This document shows, one piece after another, positions 139 through 41,696 of a stretch of DNA of 64,000 nucleotides (position 1 is its first letter; each line of letters starts with the position of its first letter). A program made the translations under genes and the position numbers. Under the pieces are notes generated by a model. The model saw only the letters and a list, made by a program, of their open reading frames with translations, searched no databases and was not told the origin of the DNA. Origin of the DNA: Octopus sinensis (lineage: Eukaryota); contig NC_043009.1 in NCBI RefSeq assembly GCF_006345805.1, positions 372,001 through 436,000 of the forward strand, written 5' to 3'.

Positions 139-244
139 TGATTGGCTGTGCCATGGCTGACTGCAACATGCAAAAGATGATGGAATGCCAAAGTCAATAC
201 GCTCCGAAGATGCAAGACGGCGGAGATAAAGAGACTATGTGCAA
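139..244 (+). CDS. Gene A, internal coding exon (end of signal peptide plus N-terminal mature domain) of a small 6-Cys secreted/GPI-anchored protein
   Basis: Acceptor tttgtttcag| and donor |gtaaga. 106 nt, phase 1 to 2, reads xIGCAMA-DCNMQKMMECQSQYAPKMQDGGDKETMC(K). Phase-compatible with 4512-4633 and conserved with its splice sites in the inverted copy at 41591-41696. Confidence 0.85.
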
Positions 245-802
245 GTAAGATAAATAAATAAATAAAAAACAAAGAATTTTTTTCATTCTTCCATCGTTCT
301 CTTCTTCTTAATACATTGTCAGGAGATTTAGTTTCGTACTCATGAGGAGCCAGGTTCGATCCACCTAAGTGGTGCCTATGTCAAGTTTTGTTAACCTCTA
401 AATCTAGGATTGACTTAATCCGCGTGGCGAGGACACAGCTCCAGTGTTCAGGAATTTGGAAGAACAAGTAGTCTCCCCTTAATTGCGCCCTATTCTTAGT
501 GACTTTCTGACCCGGAGAGGTACTACTCTACAGTTATAGATCCAGCAACAGATTGATCCTGTGGCCATGGCGTTGCATCAGGTCTACCTGCCAGTGAGTA
601 TTTTTGTATGGGAGTCAGCGATATAATTGGAAAAAAATACATTCAAAGGGAGAGGCGAAGGTCACTCGTGTGTGTGTGTGAGTGTGTGTGTGTGTGAGTG
701 TGCGTGTGTGTGAGTGTGTGTGTGTGTGAGTGTTTTTCTATGCTCCTCCCACCACCGCGTAACAACCACTGTTGGATTATTTATGTCTCTATAACTTTGT
801 TT

Positions 803-1060
803 GTGGAGGTGCGTGGCTTAGTGGTTAGGGTGTCGCCATCATTAGCATAAGAATGTGGTTTCGATTCCTGGACCGGGCGATGCGTTGTGTTCTTGGGTAA
901 AACACTTCATTTCACGTTGCTCCAGTCCACTCAGCTGGCAAAAATGAGTAGCCCTGCGATGGACTGGCGTCCCGTCCAGCTAGGGTACTCATATACCATC
1001 GAAATAGGGAAACTGGGCCCATGAGCATGGCTAGGCTTTAAAAAGTGCGAATTTATTATT
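803..1060 (+). mobile_element. tRNA-derived SINE
   Basis: A box tggcttagtgg, B box ggtttcgattcc, then gatggactggcgtcccgtccag core. Confidence 0.7.
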
Positions 1061-1289
1061 ATTTTATTTTTTTGTAATTTTGTTTGGCAAAACCGCCCGA
1101 TAGAATAAGTACTTAGCTTCAAAAGCGAAAGCGAGTACTGGCATCAATTTGTTCGACATCAAAATAGAGCCCCAGGAGGGCCGTCTGATAACTAAAGCAA
1201 GTAAAAGAAAATATGGAGGAAAGGTTATTTATCGTCCATTTTATGGAAAATTAATAACACTAATTTCAAATAATATACACTTTCACACC

Positions 1290-1515
1290 AGGCGGCGAGC
1301 TAGCAGAACCGTTAGCACGCTGGGCGAAATGCTTTGCGGTATTTCGTCTGCCGCCACGTTCTGAGCTCAAATTCCGCCGAGGTCAACTTTGCCTTTCATC
1401 CTTTCGGAGTCGATTAAATAAGTACCAGTTATACACTGGGGTCAATATAATCGACTTAATTCGTTTGTCTGTCCTTGTTTGTCCCCTGTGTGTTTAGCCC
1501 CTTGTGGGTCGTAAA
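1290..1515 (+). mobile_element. Cephalopod-type tRNA-derived SINE (related copies at 52105-52335 +, 54775-54980 -, 46200-46330 -)
   Basis: ggcggcgagctagcagaa...gagctcaaattccgccgagg...cctttcatcc...aagtaccag, repeated across the window. Confidence 0.7.
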
Positions 1516-2509
1516 GAAATAGGTATTTCATCATTCTTTGCGTTCAAATTGCGCAGTGGTCAGCTTTCCCTCTCATCCTTTCGGCATCGATAAATTAAAT
1601 ACCAGCTACGTTCTGGGGTCGTACTGGACCCCACCCCCACAAAAAATTCGTTCTTTGTTTCTAGTGTAGGGAAAGAATACACACTTTCAGTCAACTTAGA
1701 AAACCATCTTTTATTTATTTAATTTTTTTGTTCTTTACTTTTTTCAGTCATTTCAGTGCAGCATGCTGCAACATGGCCTTGAAGGGTTTTAGTCGAACAA
1801 ATCGACCGCAGGACTTATACTTTGCAAACCTAGTACTAACTCTATCGGTGTCTTTTGCCGAAATGCTAAGTTACGGGAACGTAAACACGTCAGAATCGGT
1901 TTCCAAGCGATATCGGGGAGACAAACACAGACACACAGAAAGACACACGCACAAACACGCACACACATATATATTTATATATATATATATATTTATATAT
2001 ATATGTGTGCGTGTGTGTGTGTGTGTGTGTGTCTGTGTGTGTGGTGTGTGTGTGTGTGTGTGTATACAGTTTCCGTCTACCAAATCCACTCACAAGGCTT
2101 TGGGCGACCCGAGGCTATAGTAGAAGACACTTGCCCAAGTGGCAACGCGGTGGGACTGAACCCGGGACTATGTGGTTGGTAAGCGAGCTACTTTATTTTA
2201 TTTTATTTGCCATCGGTATCTTTTGCCGAACCGCTAAGTCACGGGGACTTAAACACGCCAGAATCGGTTTCCAAGCGATATCAGGGAGACAAACACAGAC
2301 ACACAAAAACACACACACACTCACACACACTCACACACACATACATGTATATATATATATATATATATATATATATATAATATATATATATATATATATA
2401 TATATATATATAAATATACGGTGGGCTCCTTTCAGTATCCGTCTACCAAATCCACTCACAAGGCTGAACCCCGGACTATGTGGTTGGTAAGCGAGCTACT
2501 TTATTTCAT

Positions 2510-39330: not shown

Positions 39331-39452
39331 TTGATGACTCTGGACATCCTAATTTTTTAATGGATTGACGAACTTGGTCGAATATTTTCTCCACTTCATC
39401 ACCGCAACCGCTAGCGGCCGAATCCATACAGTTCATGAAGTCTGAAGCTACT
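39331..39452 (-). CDS. Gene B, next coding exon
   Basis: 122 nt with AG/GTAAGT borders; reads (K)VASDFMNCMDSAASGCGDEVEKIFDQVRQSIKKLGCPESS(N). Confidence 0.87.
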
Positions 39453-40254
39453 CTATAATGGTGGAAAGAAAGAAAACATTGAATATTTACATAGGTGCAG
39501 GCGTAGCTGTGTGATAAGAAGCTTGCTTCCCAACAACATGGTTCCAGATTCAGTCCACTGCGTGGAATCTTCAGGAGGTGTCCTCTACTATGGCCTCGGT
39601 CCAACCAAAGCCTTGTGAGTGGATTTGATAGACGGAAACTGAAAGAAGCCCGTGTCTAACTACATAGGAATGGCTGTGTGGTAAGTAGCTCGCTTACTTC
39701 ACAACAGAAGAGTTCGCGTTTTTATACGCTCCGAAGTCATATCGTTCGAAGTCGAAATATTGGAAAACTGAAGCACGACTACAGGTAAGGCGTTTATTTT
39801 GGGGGGAGGTCAGTGGAGTCCGTTGTTTCGTAATTAATAATTTTTGACGAGCAAGGGTCTCCACTGGGTTATTTGCCTGCATGTGGTCCTGCAAAAAGAC
39901 TCACTGTGTAGTGAGAATTGTGTTTTTCTTGAGGGGGGCGTATCCCCTCCGGAAATTTATGATTTTATGTGACTGTGGATTTTAAGTGACTTCGTGGATG
40001 TTACCAATTGGAGTACAACCAGAATTTTACTATTTGGAGTACAACCAGGAATTTTTTGCTGCTATTTTTGTGCTGCAAGGGATTTTTAACTGTGCGACAA
40101 AGGATTACCAGAGTTGAATTTTGTTGTCCTTTGAACTGTCATCCTTCGTTCTTTTCCTCTATTCTGTCATTCTGCTTTTTTTGTGTTTGCATTGGGGACT
40201 CTTATCTGAACATTTTTGATTTTGTTATGAACTTTTACAGTTTATTTTATTTTA

Positions 40255-41106
40255 TTGGTGATAAACAAATGTAAGAAAGCCCTGGGTGGCGAATTGTGGA
40301 CCTCAAGGACTGGTTCAAACTATGATGCGGGAACGGTGTTGTTGCGTCCCTATTGCAAGGACCGCGACACCATCTGTGTATTCCCTCAGAGTGAAATTGA
40401 AGAAGAGTCGGCTGGATTTGAGCCAACTTATAGGTTCATCCGTAGGGGGACAATGTACGCTACGGTGTGCGTGCTTTTCGACACCCCTACGGAGGCTCAG
40501 AAATTTGCGAGACAACTTGAAGATGGGATGAAGATTTTGCTTCTCCCCACGTATGGTGTGCGTAAATTGACAAGAGCCTGGGTATGTGGGCTGCCGCCCA
40601 GTACAGTAGATGGATGGATAGAAGATTCTATCCGTCGAGGCCTGAGTGGTGGCCTTGCCAGGCTCTTAAGTGTAAAAATACTGCCTGCGGTCGAATGGGT
40701 CGGGCTAAAAGCAATATTCACCCAAAGAGCCCGATCGGCCGAAGATCTGGTTTTACCAGATTTCTTGACAATGGCTGGTTCCAGGCACCCGGTGATCACT
40801 GAGGGACGCCCCCCACCCAAGTGTCACATGTGCATGGAATCAGGGCTCATGAAGAACTGTTACCGGGATCAGGCGGATGTCCTGGAACAGTTGATTCATG
40901 GATGTGAACACACTGTTCCCCCAACGGAGACTTCTGCTCCTTCACTGGAGAAAGTTGAGGAGGAGGTAACCTCCTCGAGAAAAGGTACTAAGAGGAACAA
41001 GGTGGGCAACAATGGTTGCCCGCCGATGGCGGGACGGGAGGAGGGACCTCCGGATATGTCGGAGGAACTCCACCCTCCCGCCGCAAAGGGGAAAAGAGGG
41101 ACATAA
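40255..41106 (+). mobile_element. LINE ORF1-like (gag-like zinc-knuckle) reading frame, no adjacent ORF2
   Basis: 283 aa with an RRM-like region and GRPPPKCHMCMESGLMKNC; lies in an intron of gene B, antisense to it. Confidence 0.65.
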
Positions 41107-41590
41107 ATAATCCAACCGTGGTTGTTACGCGGTGGTGGGAGGAGCATAGGAAAACACTCACACACACAGACGAGTGACCTTCGCCTCTTCGAATGAATGT
41201 ATTTTTTTCCAATTATATCGCTGACTCCCACATAAAAATATTCACTGGCAGGTAGACCTGGTGCAACGCCATGGCCACAGGATCAATCTCTTGCTGGATC
41301 TATAACTGTAGAGTAGTTCCTTTCAGGGCCAGAAAGCCCCTAAGAATAGGACGCAATTAAGGGGAAACTACATGTTCTTCCAAATTCCTGAACACTGGAG
41401 CTGTGTCCTCGCCACGCGGATTAAGTCAATCCTAAATTTAGAGGTTAACAAAACTTGACCTAGGTGCCACTTGGGTGGATCGAACCTGGCTCCTCATGAG
41501 TACGAAACTAAATCTCCTGACAATGTATTAAGAAGAGAACAATGGAAAAATGAAAAAATTCTTTGTTTTTAATTTATTTCTTTATCTTAC

Positions 41591-41696
41591 TTGCACCGAG
41601 TCTCTTTATCTCCGCCGTCTTGCATCTTTGGAGCGTATTGATTTTGGCATTCGATTACCTTTTGAATGTTGCAGTCAGCCATGGTACTGCCAATCG
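41591..41696 (-). CDS. Gene B (paralogue of A), internal coding exon
   Basis: Reverse complement: tttgtttcag|CG ATT GGC AGT ACC ATG GCT GAC TGC...TGC AA|gtaaga. Reads xIGSTMA-DCNIQKVIECQNQYAPKMQDGGDKETRC(K), 106 nt like copy A. Confidence 0.85.

Follow-up and report, generated by a model that had tools for sequence, protein, structure and literature searches.

Cone-snail conotoxins combine a conserved signal sequence with a hypervariable mature peptide held by a cysteine framework. RGM proteins carry a glycosylphosphatidylinositol (GPI) anchor, and their N-domain is a helical bundle. Vertebrate neuritin is described in one account as strongly conserved between species (PMC10123642). Here these systems are compared with a small gene cluster of Octopus sinensis. 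The window, that is the whole stretch of DNA that was analysed, comprises 64,000 nucleotides (NC_043009.1, 372,001 to 436,000) and is 100% identical to chromosome CM016871.1 (GCA_006345805.1), where it occupies positions 15246-79245 of the locus designated L001. It carries all or part of three gene copies (A, B and C) in an inverted-repeat cluster. The genes code for precursors of some 115 aa, with a predicted signal peptide, a six-cysteine mature domain of about 69 aa and a hydrophobic C-terminal anchor signal. The original prediction on this DNA held that A and B differ almost only at amino-acid-changing sites, and attributed this to diversifying selection on the exposed domain. On balance we consider it probable that A and B belong to a functional, fast-evolving surface-protein family that shuffles its exons, and the replacement-rich difference between the two would be mostly the by-product of one gene conversion tract.

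The origin of the A/B differences

The coding sequence of each gene is split into four exons of 37, 106, 122 and 83 nt; those other than the 106/122-nt pair were located by tblastn with the NCBI protein. The joined peptide of A (LOC115218432, plus strand, with its start exon 5.2 kb to the left of the window) matches isoform X2 at 100% (XP_029644101.1/P0001, 115 aa), and the spliced product of B (LOC115218434, minus strand) is XP_036363987.1/P0018. The 106-nt exon, taken earlier for the first, is really the second coding exon, with a 37-nt start exon encoding MNGLYYGICLLF upstream. Exon by exon, A and B differ at 0/37, 11/106, 4/122 and 0/83 nucleotides, which reproduces exactly the counts first given for the last three. 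Confirmed as well were the 12 residue changes (V13A, C16S, A17T, M23I, M26V, M27I, S31N, M46R, A49V, L53F, E58D, A75V) and the preservation in both copies of the six mature cysteines, the reading frames and the AG/GT splice sites. The statement that the changes lie in the exposed domain holds for nine of the twelve, and fails for V13A, C16S and A17T, which precede the likely signal cleavage site between AMA and D (by inspection).

The statistical part of the original claim fared less well. Two codons differ at two positions (ATG/GTA and ATG/CGG), and path-averaged Nei-Gojobori counting replaces the 14 nonsynonymous and 1 synonymous differences by 13.0 and 2.0, on 276 replacement and 69 silent sites. 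Silent sites make up 20% (69/345) and not 25%. The ratio of replacement (dN) to silent (dS) divergence is 1.65, with a one-sided Fisher P of 0.39, so that dN is not significantly above dS. The P of about 0.08 obtained before arose because 25% silent sites were assumed and the two double-hit codons were counted as wholly replacement. Under neutrality, 15 differences should comprise 12 replacement and 3 silent ones, and by our own arithmetic the binomial P is 0.17 with one silent difference and 0.40 with two. Within the mature domain dN is 0.061 and dS 0.055, and the introns of A and B mismatch at 5.6%. The replacement excess is real as a pattern and within chance, and even a ratio of 14:1 among 15 differences lies within the neutral expectation.

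Six A/B-type copies from two species were available, namely A, B and C and the Octopus vulgaris copies V1, V2 and V3. By coordinate arithmetic, V2 (L003, OX597826.1, 0.44-0.47 Mb) is on the minus strand like B and at a comparable distance from the chromosome start. In chained pairwise BLAST, which also gave the A-B, B-V1 and A-V1 intron divergences, B and V2 mismatch at 1.35% over 15.7 kb, and they are orthologues. Only one stretch is missing from their alignment chain, some 1.3 kb in the neighbourhood of the 106-nt exon. In a five-way alignment, every one of the 16 informative sites between exon base 0 and +359 shows B equal to V1 and V2 equal to A (15 of these also equal C), and no such site occurs upstream, to -278, or past +412. 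Inside the tract 2/106 exon positions separate B from V1, whereas their introns differ by 6.6%; outside it B and V2 differ at 3/242 coding sites (2 replacement, 1 silent), which is the intron rate. The exon of A (alpha-type) and that shared by B and V1 (beta-type) are each present in both species. These sites are most simply read as the trace of one gene conversion that postdates the split of O. sinensis and O. vulgaris and in which a V1-type paralogue overwrote a segment of B; B would thus have obtained its 106-nt exon together with some 250 nt of the intron downstream of it, and parsimony points to B as the recipient. V1 itself lies on another chromosome-scale scaffold than the main cluster (L002, chromosome OX597836.1, 44.8 Mb). 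It adjoins a histone gene there, and the O. sinensis counterpart is not among the annotations.

Eleven of the 15 A/B differences lie inside this one tract and came in jointly with it from an older paralogue lineage. From such an origin it follows that the 11 exon differences measure the distance between the A and V1 lineages. A and V1 differ by 9.3% in introns and 10.4% in the exon, so the total divergence is neutral-like. In the 122-nt exon, A49 and A75, two of the four A differences, are common to V3 and look likewise exchanged or old. Thus, in paralogue comparisons within inverted-repeat clusters, conversion tracts need checking first.

The polarity of the methionines was also reconsidered, with Argonauta and the more distant D subfamily (O. 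bimaculoides LOC106875478 and its 89% identical O. vulgaris orthologue) as outgroups. The four methionine losses ascribed to B are present as differences, but at least two of them are gains in A and C. At mature position 7 A and C have ATG (Met), and V2 and B/V1 have GTA (Val); since V2, B, V1, V3, D and Argonauta all have Val, Met was gained in A/C. The same is concluded for position 4 (A/C ATG, Met; V2 ACT, Thr; B/V1 ATT, Ile; V3 Leu) because the outgroups have Ile (D) or Phe (Argonauta). Position 8 is Met in A/C, V2 and V3, Ile in B/V1, Ser in D and Asn in Argonauta. At position 27 (A Met, C Leu, V2 Met, V3 Val, D Phe, Argonauta Ile) the Arg of B/V1 is derived in the beta type.

It could be asked whether the inverted pair is an assembly artefact, in which two divergent haplotypes, or a repeat that was collapsed or expanded, have been misplaced as A and B. 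Microsatellites and transposons are extremely dense in this region, and its inverted repeats reach 98% identity. We nevertheless regard an artefact as very improbable: A and B are separated by 5.6% intron mismatch and by several kb of inserted sequence, B is matched by an orthologue of its own, V2, in O. vulgaris, which was assembled independently, and NCBI annotates A and B as separate loci.

Constraint and selection among six copies

Variation among the six copies is distributed very unevenly over the gene. The start exon is variable at 0/37 positions (flanking 150 nt, 8-12%) and the anchor exon at 2/83, both silent (flanks, 8% downstream and 23% upstream, the latter in an AAT repeat), and the two together show no replacement change. 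The 106-nt exon is variable at 34/104 positions (flanking 150 nt, 17% downstream) and the 122-nt exon at 27/122 (flanks, 9% upstream and 19% downstream). Purifying selection acts on the start and anchor exons. That a dead copy is decaying neutrally is unlikely, because these exons lack replacements, all six cysteines are invariant across the copies and the frames are intact in five of six.

One-ratio codon models (our own GY94-type code, F3x4) gave a dN/dS ratio, omega, of 2.0 for the whole coding sequence of five copies (P 0.115) and of 2.7 for their mature domain (P 0.065). For six copies, or for the five intact ones, omega was 1.6-2.0 (P 0.07-0.17), and with separate trees for the two halves it was 1.5 (P 0.22). 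Taken by exon, omega was 1.29 for the 106-nt exon (P 0.59) and 3.9 for the 122-nt exon (nominal P 0.024). The expectation that dN/dS would exceed 1 with more sequences is therefore borne out by the point estimate (1.5-2.0) and not by its significance (P 0.07-0.22).

A mean omega that the one-ratio (M0) tests cannot distinguish from 1 would fit a situation of relaxed constraint only, in which redundant copies drift at non-cysteine surface residues (omega about 1) and some of them become pseudogenes. The near equality of dN, dS and intron divergence between A and B points the same way, as do the 2-nt deletion in the 106-nt exon of copy C and the fast evolution of the D subfamily, where dN/dS between O. 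bimaculoides and O. vulgaris is 0.65. Relaxation by itself is nonetheless unlikely in our view, given the strict conservation of signal and anchor exons and of six cysteines in all copies, the intact frames of five of these, and the persistence of alpha and beta exon types in both species. The site-class test described below also rejects a mixture of neutral and conserved codons.

In that test, which was run with our own code, with branch lengths proportional to those of M0 and a separate tree for each half, M2a was favoured over M1a (2dlnL 18.6, P 9e-5), with about 10% of codons at an omega near 12 (7-20 across runs). Candidate codons were 23, 32, 46, 53, 58 and 78, among them those of mature positions 4 and 27, two of the methionine positions. 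Masking the complex codons 77, 78 and 80 gave P 0.0076, dropping C gave 2e-5, doing both gave 0.027, and dropping V3 gave 1.4e-4; the masked tests had 2dlnL of 9.8 and 7.2, whereas the maximum likelihood-ratio statistic in 19 data sets simulated under M1a was 3.3. Site models on a wider copy set, as the original prediction had advised, thus favour M2a (P 9e-5 to 0.03), with caveats of recombination and multi-hit codons. We infer that a minority of helix-surface codons (23, 32, 46, 53, 58 and perhaps 77-80) may be under diversifying selection, a suggestive result.

Whether the A/B differences, too, were driven by diversifying selection, acting on the exposed mature domain of a surface protein involved in recognition, is another matter; we regard this as possible, if rather unlikely. 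Most comparisons give omega point estimates above 1, the 122-nt exon taken singly reaches nominal significance, M2a beats M1a, and each of codons 23, 46 and 58 encodes four different amino acids across the six copies. By helical-wheel reasoning, the variable helix-1 residues 23, 27, 30 and 31 would lie on one helical face, away from Cys29. The mature-domain exons also vary more than clean flanking intron. Against this reading, the exons of V3 (L010 15442-15547 and 19699-19820), which differ by 10-26% from the other copies where clean 300-nt flanks differ by 3-9%, have a dS as high as their dN (both about 0.22). The pairwise test is far from significance, and the main carrier of the signal, the 106-nt exon, has an omega close to 1, came in as a block by conversion and contributes three changes that fall in the signal peptide. 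The site test, for its part, draws on few, recombining sequences and on multi-hit codons. The selection claim thus fails in the pairwise comparison (dN/dS 1.65) and is retained, as a suggestion, from the site test on six copies. The preferred reading remains that of a functional family in which exon exchange and constraint act together.

The cluster and its surroundings

By self-BLAST, the window is composed of large inverted repeats (Table 1). A and B stand tail-to-tail and B and C head-to-head, with C on the plus strand and continuing past the right window end. B and C are 96-98% identical in their 5' parts, from the promoter to early intron 1, and 4-15% different in their 3' halves, an unevenness that fits ongoing concerted evolution, as would be expected.

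Table 1. Features of the window, with positions counted from its first nucleotide
Feature	Position	Strand	Remarks
A second coding exon, 106 nt	139-244	+	End of signal peptide and mature helix 1; alpha-type; cag acceptor, gtaag donor
A third coding exon, 122 nt	4512-4633	+	Helices 2-3, three Cys
A terminal exon, 83 nt with stop	11929-12011	+	(N)VPKLYAHSSVISGAFIAAVAFKKLLL, then stop; hydrophobic C-terminal anchor signal; identical to that of B
B start exon, 37 nt	49405-49441	-	Encodes MNGLYYGICLLF + G
B second coding exon, 106 nt	41591-41696	-	Beta-type, V1-like
B third coding exon, 122 nt	39331-39452	-	
B terminal exon, 83 nt	31195-31277	-	
C start exon	61749-61785	+	Rest of C at L001 84331-87806, beyond right window end
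Gene conversion tract in B, minimal	41337-41696	-	At least 360 bp; outer limits 41285-41752
A/B inverted duplication, left arm	98-6307 and 41737-38063		Colinear blocks, 85-94% identity, insertions between
Inverted repeat	11799-12733 and 31406-30441		92% identity
Inverted repeat, 3.4 kb	14467-17851 and 24198-20804		98.3% identity; between A and B 3' ends
B/C head-to-head arm	47201-49734 and 63952-61463		96-98% identity; promoter, start exon, beginning of intron 1
B/C arm, best part	47201-49340 and 63952-61813		98% identity
ISXO2/IS1595-like DDE transposase reading frame	15715-16395	-	In the 3.4-kb repeat; Pfam E 3.5e-14
Helitron-like stretch	25142-29946	+	G+C about 46%, elsewhere 33-40%
Reverse-transcriptase reading frames in A	9119-11650	+	RVT_1, zf-RVT; last intron
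Reverse-transcriptase reading frames in B	32709-37700	-	RVT_1, zf-RVT; last intron
Antisense reading frame in A	3241-3756	-	Second intron; 171 aa
Antisense reading frame in B	40255-41106	+	Second intron; 283 aa
C2H2 zinc-finger reading frame	56509-57201	-	230 aa; centre of B-C intergenic palindrome

The 106-nt exon of C (L001 84331-84434) is frameshifted by the loss of 2 nt (GCTCCG to GCCG). NCBI isoform X1 of LOC115218432 (L001 10001-87806) joins exons 1-2 of A to exons 3-4 of C; it spans about 65 kb, passes over gene B, which is on the opposite strand, and is a chimera of two copies, probably a model made to evade the frameshift in C. The practical warning is that two gene copies have been merged in this annotation. 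Short tblastn matches to LGCPESS at 46926, 50903 and 60428 were considered as pseudo-exons and rejected as seven-residue matches in repeated transposon-like sequence; blastn with the exon and its flanks gave no match at these three places.

The matching O. vulgaris chromosome holds V2, V3 (P0021, L010) and the more distant D gene. V3, which has the same intron sizes as A, was rejected as its positional orthologue, the introns of the two being 7.2% different. O. bimaculoides LOC106875478 was likewise rejected as an A/B orthologue and placed in the D subfamily, since O. vulgaris has its own copy of it; the sole A/B-type O. bimaculoides sequence that was found is a 63-aa fragment without DNA.

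Several mobile elements surround the genes. A related piece of the 3.4-kb repeat, which carries the transposase reading frame, lies downstream of C (L001 91268-92173). The G+C-rich stretch between A and B has long open reading frames (ORFs), one of them with PIF1 helicase and Pif1 2B domains, and looks like an inserted Helitron-type element. The reverse-transcriptase ORFs of A and B share the orientation of their host genes; they look like separate insertions in the same intron, because the DNA of one does not align with that of the other. Both A and B keep a long antisense ORF in their second intron. It gave no Pfam match in either copy and may be a mobile-element remnant that predates the duplication, and the C2H2 zinc-finger ORF may be a retroelement tail. 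Dense (AAT)n, (AT)n, (AC)n and (GTT/GGT)n microsatellites occur throughout the window (for example 6222-6615, 12532-12789, 19530-19765 and 55596-55835). Several abut exons, and in A and B alike an (AC/GT)n run stops about 30 nt short of the 106-nt exon. In a SINE-like stretch at about 800-900, ARAGORN found no tRNA.

The protein and its relation to known systems

On inspection, the precursor has a hydrophobic N-terminus, six cysteines and a C-terminal region of SS-N, spacer and hydrophobic tail. GPI attachment of the A/B-type protein is suggested by this layout, although the conserved KK three residues before the C-terminus is atypical for a GPI-type tail. A HMMER search of 1.84 billion representatives found relatives of about 115 aa in Argonauta hians, O. 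bimaculoides, a species known from Logan assemblies and Saccostrea oysters, and all the mollusc relatives have a signal peptide, six cysteines and a hydrophobic C-terminus. The Logan homologue is an uninterrupted intronless ORF of 351 nt on contigs of 2.5-2.8 kb and is listed in 66 Logan blocks, from which it follows that the family is transcribed in another species. A literature search on the three LOC loci, or on neuritin in octopus or molluscs, found nothing relevant.

Against Pfam, A and B match NRN1 (PF15056) at 19.2-22.5 bits (E 1.3e-4 to 1.4e-3), below the 27-bit gathering score, and six of 11 family members do so at E<=1, all sub-threshold. Sub-threshold matches to RGM_N (PF06535) were obtained in seven of the 11 (best E 3.6e-4). 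With the family profile, the top matches in the PDB were the N-domains of RGMA and RGMB (4UHY and 4UHZ), with five cysteines aligned and weak E values of 0.12 and 1. A full-length RGM is excluded, as the precursor has 115 aa and nothing between the six-cysteine domain and the anchor signal. AlphaFold2 predicted three helices (23-38, 43-60 and 66-81) from an 11-sequence alignment. The protein is thus weakly neuritin/RGM-N-like and is assigned to neither family.

Taken together, A and B would be intact members of a young, rearranging gene cluster. Selection would preserve the cysteine scaffold and the exons for start and anchor; the mature-domain exons would evolve roughly as fast as neutral sequence, or faster, and would be carried from copy to copy by short conversion tracts. 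The proteins may act in cell-surface recognition or signalling. A bolder proposal is that a cephalopod-expanded neuritin/RGM-N-like family of membrane-anchored three-helix proteins diversifies by selection on a few helix-surface positions and by exon exchange, in short conversion tracts, between inverted paralogues, giving species-specific combinatorial surface isoforms, for instance in neuronal, self/non-self or gamete recognition; this we put forward as a speculation that is improbable as it stands.

Several points weigh against these readings. In the tract, the direction of the conversion rests on parsimony, and its donor was not found in O. sinensis. The site-class test used six recombining sequences and home-made code that does not model multi-nucleotide mutation, and every M2a candidate site is a multi-hit codon. 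The exon peak in V3 would fit old exon lineages in conversion-homogenised introns as well as it fits amino-acid selection. For the protein, all matches to Pfam families are below the curated thresholds, the confidence of the AlphaFold2 model is modest (pLDDT about 70-78 in the domain, 59.5 overall), and a Foldseek search with it against the PDB returned no match at E<=0.001. If the site-level signal holds, the genes would constitute an undescribed, fast-diversifying octopus cell-surface family related to the vertebrate neuronal GPI proteins neuritin and RGM, in which gene conversion of exon-sized segments visibly redistributes variants among copies and between species.

The predicted layout of the octopus protein resembles that of neuritin (NRN1/CPG15), a small precursor with a signal peptide, a six-cysteine domain of about 70-90 aa and a hydrophobic C-terminal GPI-type signal, and the weak, repeated profile matches (E 1e-4 to 1e-3) span most of the octopus domain. 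Unlike vertebrate neuritin, the octopus copies are multicopy and evolve at or above the neutral rate. With the RGM N-domain they seem to have a cysteine framework in common, in which five of the six octopus cysteines align to RGMA and RGMB, and the helical bundle of that domain agrees with the predicted three-helix fold; unlike RGMs, however, the octopus proteins are 115 aa long and are without the entire C-terminal RGM part. The way in which the family varies resembles that of the conotoxins, as signal and tail exons do not vary, the cysteine scaffold stays fixed, the copies are clustered, and the mature exons vary more than neighbouring introns, with omega about 1 or higher. In contrast to conotoxins, the octopus product is probably membrane-anchored and not secreted, and gene conversion has demonstrably carried part of its diversity from copy to copy.

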